Positions 11,262 to 59,528 of a stretch of DNA of 64,000 nt are shown in pieces (the stretch's first letter is position 1; each line of letters starts with the position of its first letter). The notes below the pieces were generated by a model. The model was not told the DNA's origin, ran no database searches, and worked only from the letters and a program-made list of their open reading frames with translations. The stretch spans positions 1,116,001-1,180,000 of the forward strand of contig JAMWBK010000001.1 in the NCBI GenBank assembly GCA_029953675.1. Reading direction: 5' to 3'. The position numbers and the translations under genes are program-made. This DNA comes from Rhodosorus marinus CCMP1338 (Eukaryota; Plantae; Rhodophyta).

Positions 11262-13752
11262 GTAAAGTGGAGGATTTGCTTCGTACCTCGCGTCGGGGAC
11301 GCTGTCCCGGACCCTCCGGACTAAGAACAGAGCTATTGCAGGCCCTGAGCCAGCCTGGCCAGAGCGCGCTTCTGAGGATCCTTAACAAGTTGTTCCAGGG
11401 CGTATCGGGTGCGTGTGCGCCATGGGAACATCTCCGGCAGGCACAGCTTTGCTTGCTCACGAAACCTGACCACCAGCCGGCCCACCCGCGTCTCCGGCCG
11501 ATCGGGATGGTGGAGATCCTACGGAAGTTAGCCGGGAGGTGGCTATGCCAGCGCCTTCGCCAGCGCGTCACAGCTTTTATGGCGCCCTTGCAAGTAGGGG
11601 TGGGATTTTCTGGGGGTTGCGAACTGATCACCCATGGGATCGAGCTAGAACGCGCCAGTAGGCCGGAGTGGGGAGTCTTGGTGGTTGATTTCCGGAACGC
11701 ATTCAACAGCGTGTCGCGGACGCATGCGCTAGAGGTGCTCCGACGTGTGTTTCCGGAGGCGTGGCCGTTTCTATCGGGTATTTACGGAGGGGAGAGCCTC
11801 CCCTACTTGACAACGGCGGGCACGGTTTTTCAAGCACATACTGGCGTCCAACAAGGGGACCCTTGCGGACCTCTTCTTCATGCCTGTGCCCTACAGCTCG
11901 TACTTTTACGTCTTTCGACTGAGGTCTCGGATCTTCGAATCTGCGCGTACCACGATGACGTAACATTGCTGGGCACCCCTGACACCCTGGCTAGGGGACT
12001 GACCGCGATCGAAGCGATTGCACGTCGCGTCGGTTTGACTGTGGAAACAGAAAAATGTCGCTTTCTACCCGCGAGGGACGTGTCGCTGAACTCTCTGCCA
12101 CCCACTCTGCGACTAATCAGCGAACGTGAAGGGTTCGAACACCACGGCGTCGGATTGGGGACTGACAACTTTGTCCAAGCATCCTGCGAGCGAGTTTTGG
12201 CACGGCACAAGCAACTCACCGACGCCATTGAGCACCTACCCGACAGCATGCTGCAATCGGCCTGCTTGCTTTCCCGCTTTTGTGCCGGTCCCAGACTCAA
12301 CTACTGGTTGCGCAGCCTGCCTCCAGCTTGGGGCTCGTGGATCGCGGCTAAAGCAGACGAAATGACCCTGCAACACTGGGGAACGCTCTTGGATGAGCCC
12401 CTCGATCTTGAAGCTGCTCCCGACAGGGACTTGATTCGTGCACAGATCGCTCTACCGTTGCGATTAGGGGATTCGGCGTCGCAGACCGTGGGCTGGTATG
12501 CTCGCCAGCGGCGGTTGCCTCCTGGGCTACCGCGCTGCGAACGTTGGTGACCTTCCAGATGCGAAGTGCCTGCCTCTTGGCTCGAGCTTTGACCAACGAG
12601 GATCCAGTGACCCTGCCACCCCCGCTTTTGACAATTTATGATGGTCTTCAACACGCGTTCAGGAGGTGCAACGCCGTGCCGGACGCAAATCGGTCCCGCT
12701 TTCGTTCCTGGAGGGAGCTGTTATGGGGACGAGCTGAAGCGGTTGAGGATTGTCCCCTCGACCGAGTTCTTGCCGATGACGGAGAGGCTAGCCCCGGGTC
12801 CCCTGTTGCAGACTACCCGGGTTTGAGCCGATTGTGGAGCTCCCGCACTGATGTGATTCAACATAGCCTCACCTGGGGCCAACACAGTGCCGCTCACACA
12901 GTCATGCTCAATTCTCCTCTCACGCCGCCTACCACTGCCGCTCGTCTCCGCGGCATGGGAGGCCACCTCTCGCACTTGTGGTTAACCACTCTACCGTCGT
13001 CATTGAGTCATCGTCTCGATGCTTTCCAGTTCCGTTCTGCCGCACGGATCTATCTCGGTTTGCCACAGCCTCCGTGGCACTCTAATCGGCCGTGTTTCTG
13101 TCAGGGATGTGAGAGCCGGATTGACGCTTGTGGCTACCACTTCCTGGGTTCCTGCGGACTGTTGCGAGGTCTCCGTACGAGGCGTCACACTCGCCTCAAG
13201 TACATCCTCAGCGAATTTTTGACTCGGATAGGGCATACGGTTGAGGTTGAGTCGGAACTGCCCAGATCCATCTCGGACTCTGCACCGCCCCGTTGTATAG
13301 CCGATCTCCTCGTCTCCAACGCTGCTGCCAGACGCTCAACATATGTGGACCTTGCGATTGCCTGCCCCGTGGCCAGCGCCCACCTCACCGCAGCCGCCCG
13401 CCGCCGGGGGGCCGCGGCTTCAGCCCTTCGAAGAGCTAAGGAACGACGGTATGCTGAGAGCATGGCCAGTCCGCCTTGCGCTGAGGGTCGCTCTCACCGG
13501 TTCCAGCCATTCATTGTGGAAAGCTTTGGTCACGTGGATAAGTCGGGTTTAGAGTGGTTGCGGAAATGTTTTGCTGAGCATCCTACTGAATATTTGGCGG
13601 TCTTGAGGCGTTTAAGTGTCTCCCTTTGGCGATATTCCAGCGACATGCTTTCCGAGGCGCGCCATCGGCGCCTGGGGTTGCATACTTCCCTCCCTAGTTA
13701 TTAGTTCATCTTCACGCCTTGCGTAGCGCTTCAGGCTATGCTAGTAAAGTCC
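11262..13752 (+). mobile_element. CRE-A1 copy 2, 5'-truncated (RT-RLE, one frameshift near 12467)
   Basis: ORFs 11267-12550 and 12544-13704 are near-identical to copy 1 ORF2. Confidence 0.95.
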
Positions 13753-14050
13753 AGAGCATGGCCAGTCCGCCTTGCGCTGAGGGTCGCTCTCACCGGTTCC
13801 AGCCATTCATTGTGGAAAGCTTTGGTCACGTGGATAAGTCGGGTTTAGAGTGGTTGCGGAAATGTTTTGCTGAGCATCCTACTGAATATTTGGCGGTCTT
13901 GAGGCGTTTAAGTGTCTCCCTTTGGCGATATTCCAGCGACATGCTTTCCGAGGCGCGCCATCGGCGCCTGGGGTTGCATGCTTCCCTCCCTAGTTATTAG
14001 TTCATCTTCACGCCTTGCGTAGCGCTTCAGGCTATGCTAGTAAAGTCCAG
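13753..14050 (+). repeat. Tandem duplication of the last ~296 bp of A1 copy 2
   Basis: Begins AGAGCATGGCCAGTCCGCC, same as 13457, and shares the copy-specific CCG (Pro) variant. Confidence 0.9.
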
Positions 14051-14220
14051 TAAAGCTTTGCGTAGCGCTTCAGGCTTCAGTAAAGCCCAATAAAGCCCAG
14101 TAAAGCCGAGTAAAGCTCCAGTAAAGCGAACAAAGCCGAATAAAGCCGGTTTGCGTAGCGTTTTAGGCTATGCTAATAAAGCCAAGCCAATAAAGCCAAT
14201 AAAGCCAATAAAGCCAGCCA
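14035..14220 (+). repeat. Heterogeneous A(G/A)TAAAG(T)CC tail array interspersed with short TTTGCGTAGCG.T.CAGGCT 3'-end restarts
   Basis: Directly visible repeat units. Confidence 0.9.
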
Positions 14221-14519
14221 GGAATGTTCTGAACAGGTTTTAGGAATATTATGGTTAATATCTGAACATGAAAAAGCGTATTCTAGGGTTATTAATGACT
14301 CGAACGTAACTCCAGTATAAAAAAAAGTATAAAAAAAGTACTATTAACGCATATAAACGTCTTATCAACGCATAAATAAGTGAAAAAAAGTGTAAAATTC
14401 TCAAGAGCGCGCCTTAGGAATGGAGTCGCCCCCTCGCTGATGAAGACTGTAGTGTTGGAGACGTATCAAGTGCGGAGCCATCTTACCAGATTCGCGCCGA
14501 AGTGCAGGGTAGACAAAGC

Positions 14520-16861: not shown

Positions 16862-17479
16862 GGTTCGTGGCCCCTCTGGTTTGCTACGCAGAAAACAACA
16901 GAGCCACCGACGTAAGAACCATCGAATTGAGTGCGAGAAAAATTGGCTTAGTAATGTATTCGAAAATGATAAAGGCCTTAGCTTGGCAGTTTCTTCTCGG
17001 GACGACAACCGTTTTCTTTAAATTATTCTCAGACCTCTGGACAGGGACTCTGCGTATGTTTAGAACGCCTTGAGTTTTTCTAGGTTGCGCTGGAGTAAAT
17101 AGCTACGGAATGAAGGCTCCGAGGTTACGTCAGTCTGGGTACACTGGGAATTCACCGTTTAGCTTTGGCTCGTCGCGTTGATGGTTTGGTATCAAAACAC
17201 TTCATGACCACATTTAGACGGCTTGGGAACGCAGTTCGGAAATTCTTGGGCAAATTTTCAACATCTTGAGCGCAAGGGCGAGCCTCTGGGTTCGATGAGT
17301 CAGAAAATTGTTAGAAGATTACGACTGATCTGAACATATCGAATGCTCCCCTGAAGCTCAACGTGAATGTCTTCTGTTTTCAGAGGGGTCTGGTGTAAAT
17401 CCGTAGAGCGTTCGAGAATATCGTGGCTTATTCTGGACTTTACTAGCTTATTCTGCTCTTGCTGATTACACTCGTACCC

Positions 17480-23108: not shown

Positions 23109-23109
23109 A

Positions 23110-23779: not shown

Positions 23780-23889
23780 GAACGAATGGTTTAATCGGAG
23801 GCTGAAAAAAAAAAAAACCCCGAGGGGAAAAAAAGACTAAGCGCGGCGCAGTACTCGCGCCTCCAACATCAAAGCGGCATTCATGCGCC
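23780..23889 (-). mobile_element. 110-bp young B 3' stub
   Basis: TSD atagac at 23774-23779 and 23890-23895. Confidence 0.85.
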
Positions 23890-29754: not shown

Positions 29755-30051
29755 ACTCGCTTTATTAGCATAGCCTGAAGCGCTACGCCTGGCGTGAAGA
29801 GGAACTAAGAACTAGGTAGGGAAGCGTGCAAACCCAGGCGCCTATGGCGCGCTTCAGCAAGCATGCTACTCGAATATCGCCACAGAGAGACACTTAAACG
29901 CCGCAAAAAGTTCCAAGTATTCAACAGGATGCTCAGTAAAACATTTCCGCAACCACTCCAAACCCGACTTCTCCACATGACCAAAGCTTTCCACAATGAA
30001 GGGCCGGAACCGGTGGGAACGACCCTCAGCGCGGAAGACTGGCCATACTCT
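29755..30051 (-). mobile_element. 3' end of a CRE-A2 copy split by A1 copy 3
   Basis: Begins at TSD AGAGTATGG; HVEKSGLEW variant; AATAAAG tail. Confidence 0.88.
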
Positions 30052-33000
30052 GGACTTTACTTGCATAGCCTGAAGCGCTACGCAAGGCGTGAAGATGAAC
30101 TAATAACTAGGGAGGGAAGCATGCAACCCCAGGCGCCGATGGCGCGCCTCGGAAAGCATGTCGCTGGAATATCGCCAAAGGAAGACACTTAAACGCCTCA
30201 AGAGCGCCAAATATTCAGTAGGATGCTCAGCAAAACAATTCCGCAACCACTCTAAACCCGACTTATCCACGTGACCAAAGCTTTCCACAATGAATGGCTG
30301 GAACCGGTGAGAGCGACCCTCAGCGCAAGGCAGACTGGCCATGCTCTCAGCATACCGTCGTTCCTTAACTCTTCGAAGGGCTGAAGCCGCGGCCCCCCGG
30401 CGGCGGGCGGCTGCGGTGAGGTGGGCGCTGGCCACGGGGCAGGTAATCGCAAGGTCCACATATGTTGAGCGTCTGGCAGCAGCGTCGGAGACGAGGAGAT
30501 CGGCTATACAACGGGGCGGTGCAGAGTCCTAGATTGATCTGGGCAGTTCCGACTCAAACTCAACCGTCTGCCCTATCCGAGTCAAAAAATTCGCTGAGGA
30601 TGTACTTGAGGCGAGTGTGACGCCTCGTACGGAGACCTCTCAACAGTCCGCAGGAACCCAGGAAGTGGTAGCCACAAGCGTCAATCCGGCTCTCACATCC
30701 CTGACAGAAAGACGGCCGATTGGAGTGCCACGGAGCCTGTGGCAAACCGAGATAGATCCGTGCGGCAGAACGGAACTGGAAAGCATCGAGACGATGACTC
30801 AATGACGACGGTAGAGTGGTTAACCACAAGTGCGAGAGGTGGCCTCTCATGCCGCGGAGACGAGCGGCAGTGGTAGGCGGCGTGAGAGGAGAATTGAGCA
30901 TGACTGTGTGAGCGGCACTGTGTTGGCCCCAGGTGAGGCTATGTTGAATCACATCAGCGCGGGAGCTCCACAATCGGCTCAAACCCGGATAATCTGCAAC
31001 AGGGGACCCGGGGCTAGCCTCTCCGTCATCAGCAAGAACTCGGTCGAGGGGAGAATCCTCAATCGCTTCAGCTCGTCCCCATAACAGCTCCTCCCAGGAA
31101 CGAAAGCGGGACCGATTTGCGTCCGGCACGGCGTTGCACATCCTGAACGCGTGTTGAAGACCATCATAAATTGTCAAAGGCGGGGGCGGCAGGGTCACTG
31201 GATCCTCGTTGTTCAAAGCTCGAACCAAGAGGCAGGCAGTTAGCATCTGGAAGGTCACCAACGTTCGCAGCGCGGTAGCCCAGAAGGCAACCGCCGCTGG
31301 CGAGCATACCAGCCCACGGTCTGCGACGCCGAATCCCCCTAATCCCAACGGTAGAGCGATCTGTGCACGAATCAAGTCCCTGTCGGGAGCAGCTTCAAGA
31401 TCGAGGGGCTCGTCCAAGAGCGTTCCCCAGTGTTGCAGGGTCATCTCGTCGGCTTTAGCCGCGATCCACGAGCCCCAAGCTGGAGGCAGGCTGCGCAACC
31501 AGTAGTTGAGTCTGGGACCGGCACAAAAGCGGGAAAGCAAGCAGGCCGATTGCAGCATGCTGTCGGGTAGGTGCTCAATGGCGTCGGTGAGTTGCTTGTG
31601 CCGTGCCAAAACTCGCTCGCAGGATGCTTGGACAAAGTTGTCAGTCCCCAATCCGACGCCGTGGTGTTCGAACCCTTCACGTTCGCTGATTAGTCGCAGA
31701 GTGGGTGGCAGAGAGGCCAGCGACACGTTCCTCGGGGGGAGAAAGCGACATTTTTCTGTTTCCACAGTCAAACCGACGCGACGTGCAATCGCTTCAATCT
31801 CGGTCAGCCCCCTAGCCAGGGTGTCAGGGGTGCCCAGCAATGTTACGTCATCGTGGTACGCGCAGATTCGAAGATCCGAGACCTCAGTCGGAAGACGTAA
31901 AAGTACGAGCTGAAGGGCACAGGCATGAAGAAGAGGTCTGCAAGGGTCGCCTTGTTGGACGCCAGTATGTGCTTGAAAAACAGTGCCCTCCGTTGTCAAG
32001 TAGGGGAGGCTCTCCCCTCCGTAAATACCCGATAGAAACGGCCACGCCTCCGGAAACACCCGTCGGAGCACCTCTAGCGCATGCGTCCGCGACACGCTGT
32101 TGAATGCGTTCCGGAAATCAACCACCAAGACTCCCCACTCCGGCCTACTGGCGCGTTCTAGCTCGATCCCATGGGTGATTAGTTCGCAATCCCCAGAAAA
32201 TCCCACCCCTACTTGTAAGGGCGCCATAAAAGCTGTGACTCGCTGGCGAAGGCGCTGGCATAGCCACCCCCGGGCTAACTTCCGTAGGCTCTCCACCATC
32301 CCGATCGGTCGGAGACGCGGGTGGGCCGGCTGGTGGCCAGGTTTCGTGAGCAAGCAAAGCTGTGCCTGCCGGAGATGTTCCCATGGCGCAGACGCACCCG
32401 ATACGCCCTGGAACAACTTGTTAAGGATCCTCAGAAGCGCGCTCTGGCCAGGCTGGCTCAGGGCCTGCAATAGCTCTGTTCTTAGTCCGGAGGGTCCGGG
32501 ACAGCGTCCCCGACGCGAGGTACGAAGCAAATCCTCCAGGTCAGACTCACTGAGCGTCAGATCGATGCGAAACCTGGCCAACTCCGGACGGTCCAAGAAT
32601 ACCTCGAATTCAGGGGAAAAGTCCACGTCGGACTCAGGGAACAAAGACCACACCGTCTGGGCGAGACTATCATCGTAGGGGAGCACAGGCGCCTGGCCCT
32701 CCAAAACCCGCGCCGCTCGACTTAAATCGCCCACTGCTACCAATTTCTGTACTCGAGCCGGCACGGGCGACACTGTGCCATGCCGAGTCCGACGGGCGGA
32801 TGGTGATGACGACGCCAAATAGCTGCGCTGTAGTACTTCGAAGTCTCCCTTCAAGAACAGGGCCAGTCGGTCTCGTACTCGCCATCTGCGCTCCGATGTG
32901 TGAATGGGGGCCAGAATCAGGCGCGGCATGACCCCCAGAAAAACCCAAATGACTGTGTCCCGAATGTTACGAGCCAGGCTCGTGAAGATGAAATCGAGAA

Positions 33001-34776
33001 TGGTTCCAGCTACTAGAAGGTCTCCACGAGGGAGGACGACTGGGGGAATGCCCCCACGGAGGGGAAGCGAGCCTCCTTCCAAAGAAATCCACCGCCGGAG
33101 CCAACTCCGAAAACGCGTACGCCAAATGCCCCAGTCTCCGCTCTCCTTCAGGACATAAGACTGTAGATCCATAGGCTGCGACCTCGTAGCCGTGCCTGGA
33201 GCGCTAATCGTGCTTCTCCCCCTTAGACCCGGGGGAGTCGGTCCTCGCTCTCTTACCTCCTATCCGCACCAAAGTCGTGAGCCGCCCACTCCGCGAGGCT
33301 CGCGGAACGGATCCCGCGGGCTTCAGCAAAGTAACCTGGGCGTCCTCCACCGCCATGCCCTCAGTCTGCTCCCCTGCCTCACCACTCTCGCTGGAAGTGG
33401 TGCTAGAAGCAGAGCCCTCCAAAATCCCCAACCGCTGCAGCTCTGTCTTTTAGCGCGAAGTCAGCACAAGTCGCCTCTCCAGATCGAAGAAGCTGGACAC
33501 CGCCATGCACAGGTGACGAGGGCCCGACCGGAACCGCTCCAACAAGATCCTCTCAAGGCGCTGAATCCGTAGCCAATGGATCGCTGCCGCCTTCACGCTG
33601 CTCTCATGCTCAGAGAGCCCTGCCGTTTCTCCCGGAGACAGGAAATTGCCCGGGAAACAGTCAAAATCGAAGTGCAAAACCACCTGCGGATTGCAGCGCA
33701 ACCACCGGGCGCTCCCAGGCCACTGCTCGGTAGGCTTCGCCAGCAAGGCCTCCAGGTACTTGGCGGCGGTTGCGGAGACCAAAAACAGCACATCGCGGCC
33801 CTCATAGTTTTCGAAGAAGAAATCACCCCGGCTGCACCCTAACGATTCCGCAAAAGTGTCCCGGAAGTCTCGCATAGACGGAACCTGGCCTCGTCTAGTC
33901 TGGGGCCGGACATTTCGCACCCACAGAAATTGGTGAGTGGTCTCCACAGGTCCATCCTGAGGCTCGCGAGATGGTAGGAAACGGAGCATAGCCGCCGTAC
34001 GTGTGGCAGTGGTGCCCTTGCGCAAGACTGAGGCGTACGAAGCCCCCCCCTTGCGGCCACCACGTGTCCCCGAAGTAGCCGGGAGCTGGTGACCACCTGA
34101 GGGCTGGTCCAAGAGAGGGAAGTCCACAGCTGCAGTCTCCTCCACACCGGTTGCCGCACAGTCACCACCACCATTGCCTCGAGTCCCCGAGCGCTGAGGC
34201 GCGTTTTGGCCCGGCCTGCCGCTCCCCAACGTCGTACTGTCCCGCGCAGAAGCAACCGCCCTCGCCTGTCCCGGGACAGGTTCATGTTGATTGACCTGAT
34301 GATGACTGCCTTCATCCAACGCTGCCACTCTGGTGCAATTCAAATTCTCCTCCGAATTTGAATTTGACCTGGCCAGCAATCCCGATTCCAGCCCACCTAG
34401 CTTCTGGGTGAGCTGAGGGAGCACTCCACGATCACTCGCAGCCGTGATCAGGCTGGTGACAGCGGAGATAAGTGCACGCGCCTGGGTGCCAGAAGCGCCT
34501 TCCAAGTCAACCTTGGAAGAAAAGGTGCCGCAGCTGAGGCGAACACGGAGTCCCCCACCCGGCAGTGCCTCCTTGGGAGGACGCTCCGTCGAGCGCGGAG
34601 ATATCCCTACCATCCCGGAAGACAGAAGTAGTTGCAAATGCAAACGACGCACCGCGGAAAATCGACGGGGAGGCGTACCAGATCAAGCGCTTCCCGTAAA
34701 CGAACACGCTCGCGACCGAAAAAGAAACAAAACCCCAATCCTCAGCCACTGGCTTACTGGCATTCATCAGGATGCT
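30052..34776 (-). mobile_element. CRE-A1 copy 3, apparently full length; ORF1 33204-34613 (one nonsense at 33450), ORF2 30100-33172 (one frameshift near 30580)
   Basis: 870-aa uninterrupted RT ORF; 9-bp TSD ccatactct at 30043-30051 and 34777-34785. Confidence 0.95.
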
Positions 34777-36465
34777 CCATACTCTCAGCATACGTTCGTT
34801 CCTTCACGCGGCGAAGGGCCGAAGCAGCACCTCCCCGGCGGCGGGCGGCAGCCGTGAGATGGGCGCTTACCACAGGGCATGTAATCGCGAAGTCAACATA
34901 TGCTGAGCGTGCGCCGGCAGCATCAGAGACGAGGATATCTGCGATACAACGGGGCGGTGCCGTGTCCGAGACCGATCTGGGTAGTTCCGATTCCACCTCA
35001 ACCGTATGCCCTACCCGAGTCAAACATTCGCTGAGAATGTGCTTGAAGCGAGTGTGACGCCTCGTACGAAGACCTCTCAACAGTCCGCGTGAACCTAAAA
35101 AGTGGTAACCACAAGCATCGATCCGACTCTCACATCCCTGACAGAAAGACGGCCGATTAGAGTGCCACGGAGCTTGTGGCAAACCCAGATAGATCCGTGC
35201 AGCAGAGCGGAACTGAAAGGCGTCAAGACGGTGACCCAGTGGTGAAGGCAGCGTGGTTAAACCACAAGTGCGACAGGTTGCCTCCCATGCCGCGGAGGCG
35301 AGCGGCGGTGGTAGGCGGTGTGAGGGGAGAGTTGAGGAATATTGCCTGAGCAGCAATGTGTTGGCCCCAGGTGGGGCTATGTTGAATCACATCAGTGCGC
35401 GAGCTCCATAATCGGCTCAGACAAGGGTAATCTGGAACAGGTGACCCGGGGCTGGCTTCCCCGTCGTCTGCGAGGACCCTGTCGATGGGAGAGTCCTCGA
35501 TCGCCGCAGTACGTCCGCATAACAGCTCTCTCCAGGAGCGGAACTTGGATCGATTCTCGTCCGGCACGGCGTTGCACTTACTGAACGCCTGTTGCAGCGC
35601 ATCATATATACTCAAAAGCGGTGGCGGAAGGGTCGCGGGGTCTTCGCTAGTCAGCCCTAGCCAAAAGGCAGGCATTTAGCATCCGAAAACTCGCCAAGGT
35701 GCGAAGCGCGGTAGCCCAGGAGGCGACCGCCGCAGGCGAGCATACGAGTCCACGGTCGGCCACTCCAAATCAACCTAATCGCAACGGTAGGGAAATCTGG
35801 GCACGAATTAGGTCCCAGTCAGGAGTCGCTTCAACATCCAAGGGTTCATCCAAGAGCGTTCCCCAGTGCTTCAGCATCGCCTCGTCCGCCTTGGCTGCCA
35901 TCCACGAGCCCCAATGGGGTGGAAGGCTTCGCAGCCAGTAATTCAGCCGGGGGCAGGCATAAAAGCAGGAAAGCAGGCTTGCAGATTGTAGCATGCTGTC
36001 CGGTAACCGCTCATTGGCGTCAGTGAGCTGCTTCTGGCGTACTAAAACTCGTTCACAGGAGTCTTGCACGAAGTTGTCACTCCCCAAACCGACGCCATGG
36101 TGCTCGAGCCCCTCACGTTCACCAGAGACTCGGAGACTAGATGGCAGGGAGTCCGTCGAAACTTCACGCGGGGCGAGAAAACGGCATTTCTCGGGTTCCA
36201 CGGTCAGACCTACTCCACGTGCTATTGCTTCGATCTGGGTCAATCCCCGAGCCAAGGTCGCAGGGGTGCCCAGCAACGTCACGTCGCCGTTGAGGCACAG
36301 ATTCGCAGATCCGGCACCGCAGCCGCCATTCGCAAAAGCAGGCCCACAAGGATCACCTTGTTGAACGACAGTACGTGCTGCAAAAATAGGGCCCTGTGTT
36401 GTCAAGTAAGGGAGGCTCCCCTCCCTTACTTGATACCGGATAGGAACGGCCACGCCTCCGGGAGC
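34777..36465 (-). mobile_element. 5' portion of the split CRE-A2 copy (RT C-terminal part to RLE), degenerate
   Basis: Homologous to ORF2 with many indels; ends RTYAESM at the TSD. Confidence 0.88.
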
Positions 36466-39125
36466 TAGTCCACGTCGGACGACGGGAACAAAGCCGACAC
36501 AGTTTTGGTCCAGACTCTCATCGTACGGGGGAACAGGCGTTTACTCCAAGACCCTTGCCGCTCGACTCAGGTCGCCAACCACCGCCAATTTCGGCACTCG
36601 AGTCGTCACGGGCGAGACTGGTCCAGTCCGAGCCCGACGCACAGAGTGCTCCCTCCGATGACGCCAAGTAGCTTTGCTGTAGTACCTGACCCTCTGGGCT
36701 ACGAACGGAATTACTGAAGGCCTTGAGCAAGCCTGGCCAGAGCGCCATGGTGAAGATCCTGAATACGCTGTTCCAGGGTGCAGGGAGTGCGCCTGCCCCT
36801 TGGGACCATCTGCGACGGGCACAGCTTTGCTTGTTAACGAAACCCGACCACGAGCCGGCACACCCGCATCTCCGGCCGATCGGCATGGTTGAGAGTCTAC
36901 GGAAACTCGCCGGGAGGTGGCTATGCCAGCGCCTGCGCCAGCGAGTCACCGCCTTTATGGCGCCTTGGCAGGTAGGGGTGGGAATTTCCGGGGGTTGCGA
37001 ACTAGTCACCCATACGATCGAGCACGAGCTAGCGAGTAGGCGTGATTGGGGAGTTTTGGTAGTTGACTTTCGTAACGCATTCAACAGCGTCTCGCGGACG
37101 CATGCTTTGGAGGTGATTCGCAAGGTATTCCCTGAGGCGTGGCCGTTCCTATCCGGTATTTACGCAGGGGGGAGCCTCCCTTACTTGACAACGCAGGGCT
37201 CTGTTTTTGCAGTACGTACTGGCGTTCAACAGGGTGATCCTTGTGGGTCGGTACTCCACGCATGTGCCTTGCAGCTCGTGCTCCAGCGACTGGCGGCTGA
37301 GGTGCCGGAGCTTCGCATCTGTGCCTACCATGACGACGTGAGGTTGCTGGGCACTCCTGAGCACTTGGCTCGGGGACTGACCCAGATCGAAGCAATCGCA
37401 CGTGGAGTAGGTCTAACCTTGGAACCCGAAAAATGCTGCTTTCTCGGCCCGCGTGAAGTTTCGAGGGGCTCCCTGCCACCTAGTCTCCGGGCCGTTGGTG
37501 AACATGCGGGGCTCGAGCACTATGGCGTCGGTTTGGGGAGTGACAACTTTGTCCAAGACTCTTGCGAACGAGTTTTAGCGCGCCATAAGCAGCTAACCGA
37601 CGCCATTGAGCGCATACCATGCTCCAATCGGCTTGCCTGCTCTCCCGCTTTTGTGCGGCCCCGAACTGAATTACTGGCTGCGAAGCCTTCCACCGCACTG
37701 GGGCTCGTGGATGGCAGCCAAGGCGGGCGAGGCGACGCTGAAGCACTGGGGAACGCTCTTGGATGAATCCCTGGATGTGGAAGCGGCTCCTGACAGGGAC
37801 CTAATTCGTGGCCAGATTGCCCTACCTTTACGATAAGGCGGATTTGGTGTGGCCGACCGTGGACTCGAAGGCTCGGCAGCGGCGGTCGCCTCATGGGCTA
37901 CCGCGCTTCGCACCTTGGTGAGTTTTTGGATGCGAAGTGCTTGCCTTTTGTCTAGAGCACTGACTATTGAAGACCACGTGACCCTTCCGCCGCCGCTTTT
38001 GAGTATCGATGATGCTCTAGATCAGGCGTTCAGTAAGTGCAACGCCGTGCCGGACGAGAGCCGACCCAGATTTCGCTCCTGGAAGGAGCTGTTATGGAGA
38101 CGAACTGAGGCGCTCGAGGACTCTCCCATCGACAGAGTACTCGCCGACGAGGAGGAAGCTAGACCCGGGTCGCCGGTTGCCGATTACCCGGGTCTGAGCC
38201 GATTCTGGAGCTCGCGCACTGATGTGATACAACATAGCCTCACCTGGGGCCAACACAGTGCCGCTCACGCAATCTTGCTCAGCTCTCCACTCACACCGCC
38301 TACCACCGCCGCTCGCCTCCGCGGCATGGGAGGCCATCTTTCACATTTGTGGTTAACGACCCTGCCGTCATCACTGGGTCACCGTCTCGATGCCTTCCAG
38401 ATTCGCTCTGCCGCACGGATTTACCTGGGTTTGCCACAAGCTCCGTGGCACTCTAATCGGCCGTCTTTCTGTCAGGGATGTGAGAGTCGAATCGATGCTT
38501 GTGGTTAACATTTCTTAGGTTCATGCGGACTGTTGAGAGGTCTTCGTACGAATCGTCACACTCGCTTCAAGTACATTCTCAGCGAATACCTGACTCGGGT
38601 AGGGCATACGGTTGAGGTGGAATCGGAACTACTCAGATCGGTCTCTCGGATAGGGCACCGCCCCGCTGTATCGCAGATCTTCTCGTCTCCGATGCTGCCC
38701 CCAGACGCTCAGAATATGTTGACCTCGCGATTACATGCCCTGTGGCAAGCGCCCATCTGACGGCTTCGGCCCTTCGCCGCGTGAAGGAACGACGGTATGC
38801 TGAGAGTATGGCCGGCCTGCCTCGCGCTCAGGGTCGCTCCCACCGGTTCCAGCCTTTCATTGCGGAAAGCTTTGGTCACATGGAGAAGTCGGGTTTGGAG
38901 TGGTTGCGGAAATGTTTCACTGAGCATCCTGTTGAATACTTGGAACTTTTGCGGCGTTTAAGTATCTCTCTGCGGCGATATTCGAGCAGCATGCTTGCCG
39001 AGGCGCGCCATCGGCGTCTGCGTTTGCACGCTTCCCTATCTAGTTCTTAGTTTCTTTTAACGGTTTGCGTAGCGCTGTAGGCTATGCTAATAAAGCCAAT
39101 AAAGCCATCCAATAAAGCCAGCCAA
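36466..39125 (+). mobile_element. CRE-A2 copy with an inverted 5' segment (36466-~36690)
   Basis: Minus-strand VLQQSYLAS..FPSSDVD joined to plus-strand PSGLRTELL..end; AATAAAGCC tail. Confidence 0.88.
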
Positions 39126-39169
39126 ACCCAGGAGGAATGTAAAATGTACTCCATGTCTACCGCGTAGGC

Positions 39170-44220: not shown

Positions 44221-44246
44221 GAGAAATATGAGGTTTCCAGGCTGCT

Positions 44247-47763: not shown

Positions 47764-48134
47764 GCTCCTCTCTGTAGATTTTACCAATGCGTTCAACCGC
47801 GTCTCTCGTCCGGCTCTCATGCACGTGGTGCGCGAAGTCTTCCCTGTAGGCTTTCCCTTTGTTAGTAGACTTTATTCTCCCCGTCGTGGGGCTACCTATG
47901 ACACCCTTGGCGCTTCCTCACACACGTTTGCGGCGCGCACAGGGGTACAACAGGGTGATCCCTTGTCCCCTTTCCTGCATGCCTGTGGACTACAACTCGT
48001 CTTGCTTTGTCTTCGCTCCGAATTCCCGCAGGTTCGTACGGTTGCATACCACGACGACGTGTGCCTCCTGGGGCCCCCCGATACTCTAGCGCTCGCTTAT
48101 GATCGTCTCCCCTCCTTGGCTTCGCGGGTTGACT

Positions 48135-49340
48135 GGACTTTACTAGCATAGCCTGAAGCGCTACGCAAGGCGTGAAGATGAACTAATAACGAGGGAGGGA
48201 AGCATGCAACCCCAGGCGCCGATGGCGCGCCTCGGAAAGCATGTCGCTGGAATATCGCCAAAGGGAGACACTTAAACGCCTCAAGAGCGCCAAATATTCA
48301 GTAGGATGCTCAGCAAAACATTTCCGCAACCACTCTAAACCCGACTTATCCACGTGACCAAAGCTTTCCACAATGAATGGCTGGAACCGGTGAGAGCGAC
48401 CCTCAGCGCAAGGCAGACTGGCCATGCTCTCAGCATACCGTCGTTCCTTAACTCTTCGAGGGGCTGAAGCCGCGGCCCCCCGGCGGCGGGCGGCTGCGGT
48501 GAGGTGGGCGCTGGCCACGGGGCAGGTAATCGCAAGGTCCACATATGTTGAGCGTCTGGCAGCAGCGTCGGAGACGAGGAGATCGGCTATACAACGGGGC
48601 GGTGCAGAGTCCGAGATGGATCTGGGCAGTTCCGACTCAACCTCAACCGTATGCCCTATCCGAGTCAAAAATTCGCTGAGGATGTACTTGAGGCGAGTGT
48701 GACGCCTCGTACGGAGACCTCGCAACAGTCCGCAGGAACCCAGGAAGTGGTAGCCACAAGCGTCAATCCGGCTCTCACATCCCTGACAGAAACACGGCCG
48801 ATTAGAGTGCCACGGAGCCTGTGGCAAACCGAGATAGATCCGTGCGGCAGAACGGAACTGGAAAGCATCGAGACGATGACTCAATGACGACGGTAGAGTG
48901 GTTAACCACAAGTGCGAGAGGTGGCCTCCCATGCCGCGGAGACGAGCGGCAGTGGTAGGCGGCGTGAGAGGAGAATTGAGCATGACTGTGTGAGCGGCAC
49001 TGTGTTGGCCCCAGGTGAGGCTATGTTGAATCACATCAGCGCGGGAGCTCCACAATCGGCTCAAACCCGGGTAGTCTGCAACAGGGGACCCGGGGCTAGC
49101 CTCTCCGTCATCGGCAAGAACTCGGTCGAGGGGACAATCCTCAATCGCTTCAGCTCGTCCCCATAACAGCTCCCTCCAGGAACGAAAGCGGGACCGATTT
49201 GCGTCCGGCACGGCGTTGCACCTCCTGAACGCGTGTTGAAGACCATCATAAATTGTCAAAAGCGGGGTTACGTTAGAAACAAAACCCCAATCCTCGACAA
49301 CAACTACTTTACGGACTTTACTAGCATTTCCGACTCCAGA
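48135..49340 (-). mobile_element. CRE-A1 copy 4 (5'-truncated, RLE ORF 48183-49259) inserted in the B RT
   Basis: TSD ttgact at 48129-48134 and 49341-49346; removing the insert restores SRVDLQVNHHKS. Confidence 0.93.
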
Positions 49341-51689
49341 TTGACTTGCAGGTTAATCATCACAAATCGTTCTACTGGGGAGGTGTAGCTGCACAAGAGC
49401 AGTAGGTACCTGCGTCGTTCCAGGATATTTGGAGACCGGATGGTTTTGTCTACTTAGGCATCCCCTACGGGTCGCCGTCCTTCGTTGAAGGCGAGTTGCT
49501 GCAGCTCCTCGGTAAGCACAGACAGCTGGTTGCAGAGCTTCGACGGCTACCTCCGGGCTTTCTCCAGTGCTCGTTGTTGCTGTTTCGGTATTGTTGCAGT
49601 CAGCGGTTAACCTATTGGCTCCGCTCACTTCCAACTCATTGGGGCGGTGGTTGGCCACTCGTGCGGATGCTGAAAGTTTCCGTGACCTTGGGTATTTTCT
49701 CGATGAAGAGCTGAGTGCTCTGTCGCGACCCACCTGTGATGTTGTGCGCGCCCAGGTAGGCCTCCCATTGCGATTGGGGGGACTGGGCCTCTGCAACCGT
49801 GTTGTGGTCCAACCCGCAGCCGCAGTAGGGGCCTGGGGAACCGCACTTCCCACTTTGAGCAGCTTGGGTATCTCAAAGTTCCGCAATTTGATGGCGAGCC
49901 TCTCGCGGGGTGTCTTGCTTCCCAGCGTACCGGAAAGCGCCCAAGACTTGTTTCTGGAGCTCCAAACCGCCCCGAATTCCTGTACTAGTCTCCCCGAAAC
50001 CGTTCAACCCCGTCTTCCTGACTGGCGAGCTGTATTTGACCGCTCTCGAGGCTCCGCCCCGGGGATTCGTCCTGCGCCTGAACCTGTTCTAGGGGAGATT
50101 GACCCAGTGGTTGCCGCAGAAGAAGAAGTTCCAGTTGATCCTCCTGATGATTCCCAGCGCCCTGGGAGCCGAGCTCAAGCACGCACGGATGCGCTGCAAA
50201 ATATCCTTTCTTGGGACTTGCACCGTGCTGCATGGCCGACTCCTCGCGCAGATGGTCTCATCTTCTCGCGCTCGCGCCCGCCTACGTAGTCTTGGAGGGG
50301 TTATTAGCTCTCAGTGGCTCATGACCGTACCAGCCTTTCCGCCACTCACACTGTCGGATTTCGAAGTGCGTACTTCACTGCGCTTATACCTCGGCTTACA
50401 TCAGCCCCCTTGGCCGTACGAGATGGGTTCGTCGTGCCCTCTCTGCTCTCAGACTGAAGACAACGCAGATTTTGGCGCCCACCTGCTCGCTAGTTGCCCG
50501 GCGGTGAAAGGTGCTCGAACCCGCCGCCATACACGGATCTTGAACCTGTTATACCGGGAACTTCGGCCTATAGTCCGGCAAGCCGGTCTGGAAATCGAAC
50601 GTGAGAGACCTTTACCCGTCGCGGACTTTCAAAATGATGAACGCCGTGTAGCCGACCTGGTGATCACCTGTGACGACAGCCGCCGTACCACATACGTTGA
50701 TCTTGCTGTTCCTAACCTTCAAGCTAGTCGTTATCTCCCGGCTGCGGGGGAGCGCCGTGGATTCGCCGCCGCCAGCATGAGACGCCGCAAAGAGATCAAA
50801 TACGCGGGGGCTTTGTCTTCCCCTGGTGTTCGTGCTTCGGCACTAGCCATCGCTTGGTACCCCTGATCATTGAGTGCTTTGGGTTCATGGACTCTGTTGG
50901 TTCTCGCTGGCTTTGGGAGTTGTTCCGCGAACGCCCTGACCGTCTTCAATCGTTGTTTACCCGCTTAAGTTTCCTGCTGTGGCGCATGAATGCCGCTTTG
51001 ATGTTGGAGGCGCGAGTTCTTCGCCGCACTTAGTCTTTTTTTCCCCCCCGGGGTTTTTTTTTTCAGCCTCCGATTAAACCATTCGTTTCGTAATGGTGGT
51101 CGGTATGAAGCAAATATTCTCAAAAAACATCAAACAAAACGTACCAAATCTGTCTTGGATTGCTCTATATTGACGGATACTAGTACATGTGTGGGATGTA
51201 CTAGTACAATTCTTTCTCTTGGCGGTGCAGATGTTCTCCAGGAGATGTAGCCAGAATCGATCGAGGGGGGATTGGTGGATGCGCTTGTAAGGGTCTGCTC
51301 TGGGCGTTTGACTTCCTGGGGTCGGTGACCTAATTGATCCATTGCAAAAGTTCTCCCCTCGTAAAGATTCCTGATATCTAGGTACAAGTTTGACATGAGT
51401 TGGCTACGCGGTCGAAGGCGAGGTTTCTTCCTAGCGAACGACATCTTAGCCAAAGTGCCTCAGTAGAATCCCAACAACGCACAGTAGCAGATGAGGTTGC
51501 GCCTTTTGCATACAACGATTGTTGACGTAAATCTTATTGCATCTCTTTTTTTATTCCGTTTCCTTGTTAAGTTTTTTTTTTGTCAGCGACATAGGACGCT
51601 GTGGGTGTGAGTTTTAGCGCCCGATGATCTCCCTCTTCTCTTCCCTATGCTTCAACCTTGCTAGCAGGAACACTATGTACACGATGGAT

Positions 51690-51960
51690 GAATTTACTAG
51701 CATATATACCTTCGTTCCTTCAGTCGGCGAGGTACAGGAGCTGCTGGCCCCGGCGGAGAGCGGCAGAAGGGAGATGGGTGCTTCACATAGGGCAAGTGAC
51801 AGCGATGTCCACAAATTCTGAGCGTCTGGCGGCTGCCTCCGATACCAAGCGATCTACGATGCAACGCTGGCGCATGGTGGCCGAGGTTGATCGGGACAGT
51901 TCCGATTCACCCTCAACCGCGTGGCCAACTCTGTTCAAATGTTCACTCAGGATGTACTCA
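51690..51960 (-). mobile_element. Diverged A-type RLE remnant joined directly to a tail
   Basis: YILSEHLNRVGHAVEGESEL..RCIVDRLVSEAAARRSEFVDIAVTCP; ends GAAGGAACGAAGGTAT-ATATGCTAGTAAA. Confidence 0.75.
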
Positions 51961-56700: not shown

Positions 56701-57749
56701 TTCATCAGGAGAAAGTCAGATTTCGCATAGACTCCCGCATGGTGATGCTCTGACCCAAAACTAGCCTCTGCTTTTATGCCGCCTCGGCGTGAAATTTGAT
56801 ATTCTCGAGTGCGTCTACAGACCAAGACTTGGCTTGTATTGCAAGGACAGTCGACACCGCATGGACTAACAATAGACTGAATGGCAGTGGTTATCGCGAC
56901 TAGGTTTCCGACGCATAAGAAAATGTCACAGACCCTCTGTTTCGAGACTTGAGCTCACGCATCCGCCAGCTAACCATTATTCTTGTCCTGTGAGCCATTT
57001 AGATAAGTCCTTCAAATCTCTAGATCTGAAACGTCCCAGGAAATGCTCTACCATTCACAGATCCAGATCGAACTATACTATAACCGTTCCTCTTCAAGGA
57101 ACTTGTTGACCATCTTGACATTGGTCGTAATCAAGCTCTCTGTGCACGGCTTATTACTGGTTGCAAGTGGTCGTCGTGCGTTGGGACGAGGCTGCAGTCC
57201 TGGTACACTCGAATGCGCAACTTGTGCAGATCTATGTACCTAAAAGCTAGAAACTTGAATTTCAGGGAAACGCTCTTCGCTTTCTTGGACTCGGCAGGCA
57301 GACATCGGCGCGGCCTCGGTAAACTTTGCGTCGTGCGCAACCTTCGTTTTCTCATAACTCCTCACCCGCACGCTCTTGCACATGTTCACCCGGCAGGTTA
57401 GCGCCTTCTTCCTCCCACTTAAATCCTTAGAATTTCCTCTGATCTATCGACGCTTACCATACGAGAAACAATCAGCAGCTACAGCCCTAGCTCCGGCTTC
57501 GGCCAGACCAGAGCCATCGCCCCACCGACTATGAGCAGCAGAAGCCGCTCTTGCGCGCGGGTGGCGAGGTATGAAAAAACGGGAATCATCAGGTTTGCGC
57601 ACAACGGGAAGTTTAGGACGGAGACCAAAACTTCCCGTTGTGGGCAAACCTGAGGATACCCTTGGACCTTAGTCACCTTTTGCTTCAAGTCTATCATCTA
57701 CGTCGAAGACTCAACTTCCACTTAAATACCGAAGCTAGCCTCGGTAGCT

Positions 57750-59528
57750 GACTTCCGTAACGCGTTCAACAGCGTCTCGCGGACGCATGCTTTGGAGGTG
57801 ATTCGCAGGGTATTCCCGGAGGCGTGGCCGTTTCTGTCCGGTATTTACGGAGGAGGGAGCTTCCCTTACTTGACAACGCAGGGCTCTGTTTTTGCAGCAC
57901 GTACTGGCGTTCAACAGGGTGATCCTTGCGGGCCGGTACTTCACGCATGTGCCTTGCAGCTCGTGCTCCAGCGACTGGCGGCTGAGGTGTCGGAGCTTCG
58001 CATATGTGCCTACCATGACGACGTGACGTTGCTGGGCACTCCTGAGCACTTGGCTCGGGGACTGACCCAGATCGAAGCACTCGCACGTGGAGTAGGTCTA
58101 ACCGTGGAACCCGAAAAATTCCGTTTCTTCGGCCGGCTCGCGTGAAGTTTCGAGGGGCTCCCTACCACCTAGTCTCCGAGCCTTTGGTGAACATGTGGGG
58201 CTCGAGCACCATGGCGTCGGTTTGGGGAGTGACAACTTTGTCCAAGACTCTTGCGAACGAGTTTTAACGCGCCATAAGCAGCTCACCGACGCCATTGAGC
58301 GCCTACCGGATAGCATGCTCCAATCGGCCTACCTGCTCTCCCGCTTTTGTGACGGCCCCCGACTGAATTGCGGGCTGCGAAGCCTTCCACCGCACGGGGG
58401 CTCTTGGATGGCATCCAAGGCGGACGAAGCGACTCTGAAGCACTGGGAAACGCTCCTGGATGAACCCCTGGATGAACCCCTGGATGCGTAAGCGGCTCTT
58501 GACAGGGACCTAATTCGTGGCCCCTACCTTTACGATTAGGCGGATTTGGAGTGGCCGACCGTGGACTTGTATGCTTGGCAGCGGCGGTCGGCTCCTGGGC
58601 AACCGCGCTTCGCACCTTGGTGAGTTTTTGGATGCGAAGTGCTTGCCTTTTGGCTAGAGCACTGACTAGTGAAGATCCCGTGACACTTCCGCCGCCGCTT
58701 TTGAGTATCGATGATGCTCTAGATCAGGCGTTCAGTAAGTGCAACGCCGTGCCGGACGAGAGTCGATCCAGATTTCGCTCCTGGAAGGAGCTGTTATGGG
58801 GACGAACTGAGGCGCTCGAGGACTCTTCCATAGACAGAGTACTCGCCGGCGAGGGGGAAGCTAGCCCCGGGTCACCGGTTGCCGATTACCCGGGTCTGAG
58901 CCGATTGTGGAGCTCGCGCACTGATGTGATTCAACATAGCCTCACCTGGGGCCAACACAGGGCCGCTCACGCAATCTTGCTCAACTCTCCACGCACACCG
59001 CCTACCACCGCCGCTCGCCTCCGCGGCATGGGAGGCCATCTTTCACATTTGTGGTTAACCACCCTGCCGTCATCACTGGGTCACCGTCTGGATGCCTTCC
59101 AGTTTCGCTCTGCCGCACGGATTTACCTGAGTTTGCCACAAGCTCCGTGGCACTCTAATCGGCCGTCTCTCTGTCAGGGATGTGAGAGTCGGATCGATGC
59201 TTGTGGTTACCATTTCTTAGGTTCATGCGGACTGTTGAGAGGTCTTCGTACGAGGCGTCACACTCCCTTCAAGTACATTCTCAGCGAATGCTCACTCGGG
59301 TAGGGCATACGGTTGAGGTGGAGTCGGAACTACCCAGATCGGTCTCGGATGGGGCACCGCCGCGCTGTATCGCAGATCTCCTCGTCTCCGATGCTGCCGC
59401 CAGACGCTCAGCATATATTAACCTCGCGAGTACATGCCCTGTGGCAAGCGCCCATCTAACGGCTGCCGCCCGCCGCAGGGGAGCAGCTGCTTCGGCCCTT
59501 CGCCGAGTGAAGGAACGACGGTATGCTG
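57750..59528 (+). mobile_element. CRE-A2 degenerate copy, truncated at both ends
   Basis: FRNAFNSVSR..AYHDD..RLE; stops at GGTATGCTG. Confidence 0.9.

Follow-up and report, generated by a model that had tools for sequence, protein, structure and literature searches.

Self-targeting LINEs are already known, with CNL1 and Zepp both inserting into copies of themselves (PMC12810828, PMC8226300). LINEs that carry a restriction-like endonuclease (RLE) are mostly target-specific, with known targets that include transposons and microsatellites, and some of their lineages, having become less specific, insert at sites that look like the target (PMC4640811). As for the 5' end, in the R1 model the cDNA anneals precisely thanks to upstream target sequence carried by the transcript, and R2 5' junctions present extra nucleotides and microhomologies (PMC2718515).

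Here we describe family A, a red-algal two-ORF non-LTR retrotransposon that is an R2-like LINE, in a 64-kb window from Rhodosorus marinus CCMP1338 (contig JAMWBK010000001.1 of GCA_029953675.1, positions 1,116,001-1,180,000, forward strand). All positions below are those of this window, unless given as consensus positions.

Family A and its proteins

ORF1 has ~400 aa and ORF2 ~1023 aa. The RT domain is of the LINE type: ORF2 matches RVT_1 in Pfam (E = 2.7e-13) and is closest, within the PDB, to the RT regions of R2 and LINE-1 ORF2 proteins. The copies also have the structure of a LINE, with no LTRs, 5' truncation (start points at consensus 98, 2239, 2645 and 3592, with one common 3' end), a 3' tail made of a 10-nt repeat, (AGTAAAGTCC)n, and TSDs that vary from 6 to 12 bp.

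The C-terminus is predicted to hold a CCHC zinc knuckle followed by a PD-(D/E)XK-type endonuclease, as in RLE-bearing LINEs. In an alignment of family A with three distant relatives, C42, C45, H55, C60, D110, D125, K155 and Y159 are invariant. We assign the RLE because the top PDB hits of a profile over the CCHC/PD..D region are all R2 proteins (9nl2, 9nl3, 9dou, 8gh6, 8ibw; E = 4e-5 to 3e-3). The nearest proteins to family A reach 33-37% identity at most.

Membership in the R2 clade proper was considered and rejected. That clade has a single ORF with N-terminal zinc-finger/Myb domains and a fixed 28S rDNA site; family A has two ORFs, in which Pfam found nothing but RVT_1 at E <= 0.1 and no zinc-finger or Myb DNA-binding domain, and no 28S rDNA target was found among the junctions read. 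Copies in the window sit in other transposons, in tails or in window-unique sequence. Host genes for ABCG and ZIP transporters are located between the arrays.

Insertions at the end of older copies

Junction sequences, TSDs and boundary-targeted insertions can be read directly in this DNA (Table 1). What is new here is that two copies, c1 and P2, are inserted exactly at the ...TGCT|A... boundary between the body and the tail of older copies, as seen from the rare tail variants AATAATGCCAGT and AGTAAAAC that are duplicated around them. The 12-mer AATAATGCCAGT occurs twice in the window, with 0.01 occurrences expected by chance. Since AAGCTGTGCT is the terminal motif of an older mini-copy, the nick for c1 was at ...GTGCT|AATAAT. 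P2 lies between two copies of AGTAAAAC (2737-2744 and 2883-2890), and was therefore inserted at the ...TATGCT|AGTAAAAC boundary of P1, with the nick at ATGCT|AGT.

Table 1. Positions of family A copies, duplications and sites in the window
Feature	Position	Strand	Details
Tandem array of four 5'-truncated 3' pieces, P0-P3	2467..3060	+	P2 = 2760-2880
12-bp TSD of c1, downstream copy	5695..5706	-	AATAATGCCAGT, abuts c1 tail
A1 copy c1 with 52-bp 3' piece	5715..10484	-	site intact, 6030-6047 region; upstream half 6047-6061
12-bp TSD of c1, upstream copy	10486..10497	-	after AAGCTGTGCT
Long same-orientation array	10629..14230	+	two A2 3' pieces, A16, c2 (11268-13752), duplicated unit, two short pieces, composite tails
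Intact internal site in copy c2	13448..13465	+	GGTATGCTG|AGAGCATGG; ORF2 codons R-Y-A-E-S-M
Event 1, 296-bp tandem duplication	13457..14048	+	last 286 bp of body and 10-nt tail
Event 2, A2 host copy, 3' part	29760..30051	-	consensus 4429-4721, ~87% identical to A1
Event 2, TSD, downstream copy	30043..30051	-	AGAGTATGG, abuts c3 tail ...GCAAGTAAAGTCC
Event 2, full-length A1 copy c3	30052..34776	-	99% identical to A1 consensus
Event 2, TSD, upstream copy	34777..34785	-	AGAGTATGG, after ...AACGTATGCTG of A2 host copy
Event 2, A2 host copy, 5' part	34777..36461	-	consensus 2724-4437
Uninterrupted site in A2 copy (36682-39095)	38788..38811	+	AACGACGGTATGCTGAGAGTATGG
A1 copy c4, internally deleted	48129..49346	-	nested antisense in another RT-bearing element
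Event 4, old copy (70% identity)	51691..51958	-	site joined to terminal motif, then flank
Event 3, A2 copy, 3'-truncated	57737..59528	+	ends ...AACGACGGTATGCTG, i.e. ...GGTATGCTG(59528); then GGAAGGGAGG

Same-orientation arrays were found at three places (2467-3060, 5695-5800 and 10629-14230), and the tail between pieces is exactly 7 nt in three cases. New copies are present in older ones both as nested copies and as 3'-end arrays, which is the pattern of a self-targeting element. Template jumping by the RT is clearly common in family A, with 33-45 nt at the 5' junctions of c3 and c4 copied from the 3' end of another RNA, so tandem pieces need not represent separate insertions.

We scored the targets against TATGCT|ARTAAA, with all 128,000 window positions as background; the choice of the boundary motif and of a ±1 offset came after the data had been seen. 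The target of P2 matches at 12/12 (p = 3e-4), that of c1 at 10/12 (p = 6e-4) and that of events 1 and 2 at 8/12 (p = 0.011). The copy c4 has the TSD AGTCAA (48129-48134 and 49341-49346), and its target, CCTGCA|AGTCAA, also matches at 8/12 (p = 0.011). A mini-insertion near 17438 has a target at 5/12. For targets other than true boundaries, Fisher's combined p is 0.003. The motif scores of the six targets are significant within one 64-kb window, with a small n. A preliminary description of this DNA proposed that the motif is recognised. The position of c1 and P2 at ...TGCT|A boundaries agrees with this, but family A is not a strictly site-specific LINE, with c4 in an unrelated element and the mini-insertion near 17438 off-motif.

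A breakpoint cluster in the endonuclease codons

Four events lie within 5 bp of one bond in ORF2, GGTATGCTG|AGAG, and three of them are on the same bond to within 1 nt. The coordinates given in the preliminary description were confirmed for all four, as was the location of the cluster in the RLE-coding region. The bond falls in the codons K-E-R-R-Y|A-E-S-M, after the conserved K-x3-Y of R2-type RLEs; its K and Y show no variation between family A and the three distant relatives that were aligned. The upstream half of the site is present in 11 copies in the window, 7 of them uninterrupted and 4 invaded or broken.

Event 2 is a clean nested insertion, genuine at the DNA level: a young copy, c3, lies in an old one in the same orientation, and the 9-bp TSD first reported there was found at both places. 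The two parts of the A2 host overlap by this TSD. The ORF1 of c3 has 400 aa and its ORF2 runs for 870 aa before a frameshift, with 33 extra, tail-like nt at the 5' end (34744-34776).

Event 1 was called by Tandem Repeats Finder at 13457-14050 (period 296, 2.0 copies, 99% matches). Its junction, AGTAAAGTCC|AGAGCATGG at 13752|13753, reads ...GGCTATGCTAGTAAAGTCC(13752)|AGAGCATGG(13753-13761), and the tail|AGAG junction is identical to that of event 2. The nick in the intact site of c2 would be placed between 13456 and 13457. A homologous 5' joining, as proposed earlier, would yield the 296-bp duplication, and cDNA annealing is accepted for R1 (PMC2718515). A template jump or a local duplication could also be the source. 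The two units have a private T>C in common, 16 nt past the site, and 1 difference in 292 positions, so a single-event template jump, a composite master RNA or an AG-microhomology local duplication fits equally well. The host of event 1 is A1-type and event 1 is thus not descended from event 2.

Neither event 3, a 3' truncation, nor event 4, a ~280-bp microhomology deletion, is an insertion. The ~1.5 kb after the end of event 3 is window-unique, with no other copy in the window. Event 4 reads GAAGGTAT-ATATGCTAGTAAATT, where GGTAT (51710-51706) is joined to ATATGCTAGTAAATT and the copy body covers 51706-51958; ~280 bp between the internal site and the terminal TATGCT are gone, and the two motifs are joined at a TAT/ATGCT microhomology. 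The kinds of event are mixed, with two tail-to-AGAG junctions, one truncation and one deletion. The idea of a site hit four times holds for events 1 and 2, where a tail is joined to it (with alternatives for event 1), but not for events 3 and 4.

On the sense strand of the element, TATGCT(N0-1)AG occurs nowhere but at the terminus and the internal site, and in the window the latter is the one internal position with insertions of family A into itself. Resemblance to the terminus alone is not distinctive, because GGCTATGCT (consensus 784), GGCTATGCCAG (2512) and GGTATGCT (3468) match it equally or better and have no breakpoints. In a standard local-alignment scan against the terminus, the internal site ranks below at least 8 other places in the element. 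The reconstructed targets do score high against TATGCT|ARTAAA.

A scan statistic, with ~30 breakpoints of which half are within the last 550 bp of the element, gives an unconditional probability of 0.013-0.065 for at least 4 breakpoints within 8 bp, and of ~0.2-0.3 for at least 2 identical breakpoints. Given event 2 and the event classes, a rough estimate from counts is 1e-4 or lower. From the unconditional range for four breakpoints and this conditional estimate, we take the cluster in the RLE-coding region to be probably real, though short of overwhelming.

Proposed homing to the 3' terminus and its alternatives

The explanation that we prefer, with about even confidence for and against it, is that family A homes to its own 3' terminus and builds tandem 3'-end arrays, the internal site being a secondary look-alike. 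The integration complex would prefer to place its antisense-strand nick 0-1 nt downstream of a (T)ATGCT-like motif before A(G/A), and the main natural source of this motif would be the body|tail junction of genomic family A copies. Insertion at that boundary would leave same-orientation, tandem, 5'-truncated 3' ends with 7-12 bp of duplicated tail between them. As the sole internal TATGCT(N0-1)AG on the sense strand, after the invariant K-x3-Y, GGTATGCTG|AGAG would serve as the secondary target. A nick there, with the top strand cut 9 bp downstream, would give the nested full-length copy of event 2; after the same nick, the cDNA would re-anneal to the upstream copy by homology and produce the duplication of event 1. 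Breaks at the site repaired without insertion would give the truncation of event 3 and, by microhomology to the true terminus, the deletion of event 4.

The motif may be read by protein or by pairing of the RNA tail, and events 3 and 4 may have begun as endonuclease breaks. Insertion at the primary target, the terminus, leaves the older copy undamaged. The support consists of two tail-joined events at the internal site and ~6 junction-defined insertions in total, from one 64-kb window.

We think it rather unlikely that the cluster reflects a hot spot at the RNA level combined with microhomology. RNA breaks or RT stops at CUG|AGAG would feed end-to-end template jumps, in which a 3' fragment leads to event 1 and a 5' fragment to event 3. 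Event 4 would arise when the RT switches template or slips from one TATGCT motif to the other. True insertion into DNA would then be limited to event 2, at a coincidental position. Template jumps are indeed frequent, since the 5' junctions of c3 and c4 carry 3'-end sequence at targets known to be tail-free, and the ability is documented for the R2 polymerase (PMC2718515). The private SNP common to the units of event 1 is what a single template source predicts, and the join of event 4 has its microhomology. Left unexplained is the same-bond position of the sole TSD-proven DNA insertion, and none of the ~13 other short 3' pieces starts at the site. That rare tail variants are duplicated at c1 and P2 speaks for TSDs made at the DNA level in the arrays. 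The local hairpin ATGCT-GAG-AGCAT has no stability above that of shuffled sequence (z = -1.1, 0.0, +0.1), so nothing marks an RNA break or pause there.

Priming guided by homology, with no motif recognition by a protein, appears less likely again. Nicks of low specificity would be selected by pairing of the RNA tail or of read-through sequence, which would favour old tails and the internal site; the read-through sequence would come from the master copy itself being at the site. An AG/CAG microhomology with the tail ...CCAG is present at events 1 and 2, c4 and the 17438 mini-insertion, the downstream half of the c4 target is tail-like (AGTCAA vs AGTAAA), the TSD range of 6-12 bp suggests loose cleavage, and the missing zinc-finger/Myb match in ORF1 and ORF2 fits as well. 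The 12-nt tail is the common form in young A1 copies, c4 included. At the internal site, just 2 nt (AG) can pair with the tail, and yet it is the recurrent internal target. Furthermore, one read-through master cannot explain both event 1, whose second unit is A1-type, and event 2, with its A2-type flank.

Least likely of all is chance, with four unrelated breakpoints close together in the most abundant and most rearranged last ~550 bp and chosen post hoc: the unconditional probabilities, the heterogeneous mechanisms and the other terminus-like places would allow it, but three of the four events share a bond to within 1 nt, the estimate given the TSD-proven nested insertion and the event classes is far lower, and independent boundary-targeted insertions point to the same motif.

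Comparison with known systems

CNL1 of Cryptococcus neoformans (R2 superfamily, near MoTeR) is, like family A, an R2-related LINE that forms arrays, with variable TSDs, frequent 5' truncation and possible insertion elsewhere; it is reported to prefer its own copies, and its TSDs are similar to the repeat that it prefers (PMC12810828). The single ORF of CNL1 and its subtelomeric arrays beside telomere repeats set it apart from family A, which has two ORFs, a tail of 10-nt repeats and no telomere repeats nearby. The exact target of CNL1 within itself is undefined, whereas those of family A are readable at the nucleotide level, as the body|tail junction and one internal look-alike.

In green algae, Zepp and Zepp-like LINEs occur as GC-rich clusters within a compact genome (PMC3446292), and this window presents the same picture. 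Zepp has one cluster per chromosome, at putative centromeres, and family A has arrays with host genes between them. Zepp belongs to the L1 clade, with an apurinic-type endonuclease and a poly(A) tail. Family A differs from it in its R2-type RLE and its 10-nt repeat tail.

The C-terminus with CCHC and RLE, and the repeated-sequence targets, are common to family A and to R2, NeSL/Utopia, R4/Dong and the microsatellite-specific HERO families, and in target-specific RLE LINEs the 3' junction is likewise precise and the 5' junction variable (PMC4640811). Unlike them, family A has no rRNA, snRNA or spliced-leader target in this window, where the repeated target is its own terminus, and it showed neither a zinc finger nor a Myb domain at the N-terminus. 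Its 5' junctions present extra nucleotides and microhomologies, like those of R2. The extra 5' sequences of family A are 15-45 nt copies of the 3' end of another element RNA, which differs from R1 and R2. Finally, homologous 5' joining, as suggested for event 1, resembles what the R1 model describes, with an older copy of the element as the upstream homology.

Structure and class of family A

Family A, a two-ORF non-LTR retrotransposon, covers about 24 of the 64 kb of the window, as tallied from the copy coordinates. Its consensus, the majority of five young copies (c1 to c5, subfamily A1), is 4726 bp long and contains an ORF1 of about 400 aa, in which no recognisable domain was found, and an ORF2 of about 1023 aa. 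The body terminates in ...GCGCTTCAGGCTATGCT; behind it stands a repeat tail, with units reading AGTAAAGTCC in A1 versus AATAAAGCC in the older subfamily A2.

A Pfam reverse transcriptase (RT) domain is present in ORF2. Its C-terminus carries, in this order, CCHC, RH, E, (A/P)D, D, K-x3-Y and P-x3-E-x2-G, none of which varies in an alignment with three relatives, each only 26-33% identical. When a profile of this region was compared with the PDB, the top five matches were all R2 retrotransposon proteins (E = 4e-5 to 3e-3); a single-sequence search gave the RT regions of R2 and LINE-1 ORF2 proteins as its best PDB matches. Because of the RT domain, the motifs and the R2-only top matches, family A is classified, by sequence, as a LINE bearing an RLE-type endonuclease. 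The single ORF and the N-terminal zinc-finger/Myb domain of the R2 clade are not found in it.

The nearest ORF2 matches are 33-37% identical, with none above 37%, and no named family stands close to this protein family. The 24-nt 3' terminus had no exact match (0 hits) in the metagenome and prokaryote-genome collections scanned, and a back-translated scan of metagenomes for the RLE region gave no confirmed relative. The two nearest relative contigs (L001 and L002) stop short of any recognisable tail.

Host genes and other repeats

The host genes in the window are single ORFs without introns. The ABCG protein has 72% identity to a Rhodosorus marinus protein, followed by matches in other red algae. 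An ORF with RTX repeats, unusual in a eukaryotic genome, may have been acquired horizontally or may belong to a mobile element. The dispersed short repeat, of about 90-200 bp and present on both strands, is possibly a MITE or a fragment of an LTR; several of its copies are 91-94% identical to each other.

Coordinates of host genes, repeats and family A features in the window
Feature	Position (strand)	Description
ABCG transporter gene	3541-5529	host gene
ZIP transporter gene	15860-16861	host gene
RTX-repeat ORF	21651-23108 (+)	485 aa; six matches to RTX calcium-binding nonapeptide repeats (Pfam HemolysinCabind, E = 2.5e-30)
Copia-type RT ORF	25669-27084	
Second GC-rich element	44000-50900	holds A1 copy c4 in antisense
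ORF in second GC-rich element	46487-48151 (+)	weak match to RVT_1 (E = 2e-6)
Tandem duplication in second GC-rich element	47518-47763	perfect, 123 bp
Dispersed short repeat copies	51000-51091, 2093-2185, 19018-19104, 1178-1267, 23781-23870, 27279-27368, 61096-61308	
Tandem arrays of family A 3' ends	2467-3060, 5695-5800, 10629-14230	same orientation, 5'-truncated
Extra 5'-junction sequences of A1 copies	34744-34776 (-), 49268-49340 (-), 10485-10512 (-), 11244-11267 (+)	
A2-like 3' fragment	10906-11260 (+)	internal deletion; perfect 51-bp tandem duplication (11140-11243)
Long tail of c5	61434-61506 (-)	composite
Long tail of c1	5660-5750 (-)	composite
Single-tail-unit insert	17425-17455 (-)	10 nt between 10-nt direct repeats
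Old 3' piece	17480-17547	opposite orientation; adjoins the single-tail-unit insert
Head-to-head A2 copies	36457-36685 (-), 36682-39095 (+)	joined within a few bases, tails outward

Four events at one internal site

The preliminary description reported four events at one site in family A's own endonuclease codons, and on re-reading the sequence at each we found all of them where it had placed them. The site is the bond before AGAG in ORF2 (consensus 4428|4429). In the protein it falls in K-E-R-R-Y|A-E-S-M, immediately after the invariant K-x3-Y. Seven of the 11 copies containing this position are uninterrupted there.

The junction of event 1, at 13752|13753, is ...GCTAGTAAAGTCC|AGAGCATGG; it creates a tandem duplication of 296 bp whose two units have a private substitution in common and differ from each other by 1 nt. 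Unequal crossing-over between two TATGCT motifs is ruled out for this event, as a full tail unit is retained at the junction. Event 2 is a full-length A1 copy (c3, 30052-34776, -), 99% identical to the consensus, inside an A2 copy that has the same orientation and is 80-87% identical to A1. On both flanks stands AGAGTATGG, and these 9 bp are the exact overlap of the A2 halves in family coordinates, which makes them a textbook target-site duplication (TSD). A single ancestral origin of events 1 and 2 is ruled out by their downstream partners, A1-type (99%) in one versus A2-type (87%) in the other.

In event 3, an A2 copy halts at GGTATGCTG (59528) and is followed by sequence unique in the window. 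In event 4, an old copy, 70% identical, passes from GGTAT directly to ATATGCTAGTAAATT. The sequence past the tail of this old copy was also considered as a 52-bp 3' piece like that in c1, and this was rejected, the alignment score being within the shuffle range.

No intact ORF2 was found among the copies in the window. In c3, the sole copy of full length, a frameshift some 210 bp upstream of the site (30459-30560, -) puts the copy's own RLE out of frame, and in c1 there are several frameshifts.

Over roughly 30 family breakpoints, all taken as equivalent and half of them in the crowded last 550 bp, a cluster of four within 8 bp has p = 0.013-0.065, which is only suggestive. The four events are of unlike kinds. 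Conditioned on the TSD-proven insertion of event 2, the start of one of about 14 short 3' pieces at that very nucleotide has p ~0.03. Adding the 3' truncation at the same bond and the deletion end within 5 nt brings the joint chance probability, as a rough estimate, to 1e-4 or lower. Among the window copies there is no insertion of family A into family A at an internal position other than the site. Given this and the joint estimate, a real hot spot is probable. For the present it amounts to a local pattern, documented well but with few events behind it.

Resemblance of the site to the 3' terminus

The site had also been described as a mimic of the element's own 3' terminus, and the evidence on this is mixed. 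On the element's sense strand, TATGCT(N0-1)AG is found only at the site and at the terminus, a pattern chosen afterwards, and target scores point the same way. Against this, equal or better look-alikes occur without breakpoints. TATGCT, common to site and terminus, has four occurrences in the consensus, which also contains GGCTATGCT (exact, at 784), GGCTATGCCAG (near-exact, at 2512) and GGTATGCT (at 3468). No breakpoints were seen at these three look-alikes, which is weak evidence, as upstream positions are present in fewer copies. A standard local-alignment scan places the site below eight other places, and this ranking and the three matches rule it out as the best internal mimic of terminus or tail. 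Hamming scans with the tail unit did not single it out either. A hairpin or palindrome at the site, ATGCT-GAG-AGCAT, was rejected as evidence on the cause of the events, the predicted stem being no stabler than that of shuffled sequence.

For the target scores, six junction-defined insertions were reconstructed and compared with TATGCT|ARTAAA, with a ±1 offset and every window position as the null. True boundaries scored 10/12 (c1) and 12/12 (P2, one piece of a four-piece array). Events 1 and 2 each scored 8/12, as did the c4 target, CCTGCA|AGTCAA in an unrelated element, and one mini-insertion target scored 5/12. For targets other than true boundaries, Fisher's p is 0.003. The scores are support and not proof of resemblance to the terminus, as motif and offset were picked with the data in view.

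Insertions at the body|tail boundary

At least two members of the tandem arrays, c1 and P2, are DNA-level insertions and not jumps. The 12-mer AATAATGCCAGT, a rare tail variant with two occurrences in the window against 0.01 expected, flanks c1, and the tail variant AGTAAAAC flanks P2. In both, the new tail abuts the first base of the older copy's tail, which places the nick at ...GTGCT|AAT (c1) and ...ATGCT|AGT (P2), precisely on the body|tail boundary. Three tails between pieces measure exactly 7 nt, the size of a TSD. No empty-site paralogues of the c1 and c4 targets were found in the window.

In the long, composite tails of c5 and c1, A1-type AGTAAAGTCC units come first and units of A2-like or degenerate form (AGTAAAGCCC, GATCAAGCC, AATAAAGCC) after them, as would be expected had the insertion gone into the tail of an older copy. 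Elsewhere a single tail unit, TAGTAAAGTC, lies between direct repeats of CAGAATAAGC and looks like a retrotransposition event truncated to one tail unit. The head-to-head A2 pair may come from a two-ended (twin-priming-like) insertion or from an inversion.

Template jumping at 5' junctions

Four A1 copies have 15-45 nt of extra sequence at the 5' junction, resembling a family RNA's 3' end (final bases of the body and tail units), for example GGAAATGCTAGTAAAGTCCGTAAAG ahead of c4. In c3 and c4, 33-45 nt are copied from the 3' end of another family RNA. Their pre-insertion targets are known to be without a tail, so the extra sequence cannot derive from the target and points to end-to-end template jumping. 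Such jumping is common in family A, and the R2 polymerase is known to be capable of it (PMC2718515). The extra sequence of c1 is an older mini-copy plus a TSD.

The A2-like 3' fragment stops at consensus 4562 and continues with A16 in place of the normal terminus. The extra sequence of c3 may contain the same ...AGCATCCTGNTGAA end, which could be a second recurrent breakpoint.

Possible mechanism and alternatives

We give roughly even chances to homing of family A to its own 3' terminus, with the internal site acting as a secondary look-alike. Event 2 would be a direct consequence of such homing. In event 1, new cDNA would have re-annealed to the upstream homologous copy, analogous to the R1 model, where target sequence lying upstream permits precise 5' joining (PMC2718515). 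Event 1 is equally compatible with a template jump in one step, with a composite master RNA and with local duplication through AG microhomology. Event 3 would reflect a staggered break that lost its 9-nt 3' overhang before end joining, and event 4 microhomology repair, or reverse-transcriptase switching, from the look-alike to the true terminus. At priming, the AG of the site can pair with the ...CCAG of the tail. The preliminary description called the system possibly self-limiting; insertion at the terminus, the putative main target, spares the older copy's ORFs, and most copies hit were already 5'-truncated.

Events 1, 3 and 4 can be accounted for by an RNA-level break or stop with template jumping, but the coincidence with event 2 is then left unexplained. 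The site's predicted hairpin does not reach significance. Priming guided by homology, with no protein recognition of the motif, agrees with the AG/CAG microhomologies and the variable TSDs. At the internal site it has only 2 nt of pairing to work with. Pure chance is unlikely.

A further extension of the homing mechanism, which we consider improbable, is that the integration complex reads (G)GYTATGCT then A in two roles, as a code shared by RNA and DNA. In RNA the motif would mark the start of body copying behind the repeat tail, and in DNA the nick position, with the family homing to its own terminus. A copy of this code would be held in the endonuclease K-x3-Y codons, where it is hard to mutate away. 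Active copies would each carry a built-in target for their relatives, giving copy-number feedback.

Comparison with known systems

If confirmed genome-wide, the pattern would define the target of a self-homing LINE to the nucleotide, a definition that CNL1 lacks so far and that exists for Zepp only in loose form. It would come from a lineage in which descriptions of such elements are scarce (red algae, R2-like RLE, two ORFs). It would also show a compact, intron-poor genome bearing many LINE copies cheaply, because new copies land in old ones. A look-alike fixed in essential endonuclease codons would be a tidy natural case for asking if transposons can restrain themselves.

LINEs with an RLE typically have specific repeated sequences as targets, transposons and microsatellites among them, and lineages with weakened specificity insert at look-alikes of their target (PMC4640811). 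Family A thus belongs to a known kind, and the added detail is that its targets are readable to the nucleotide.
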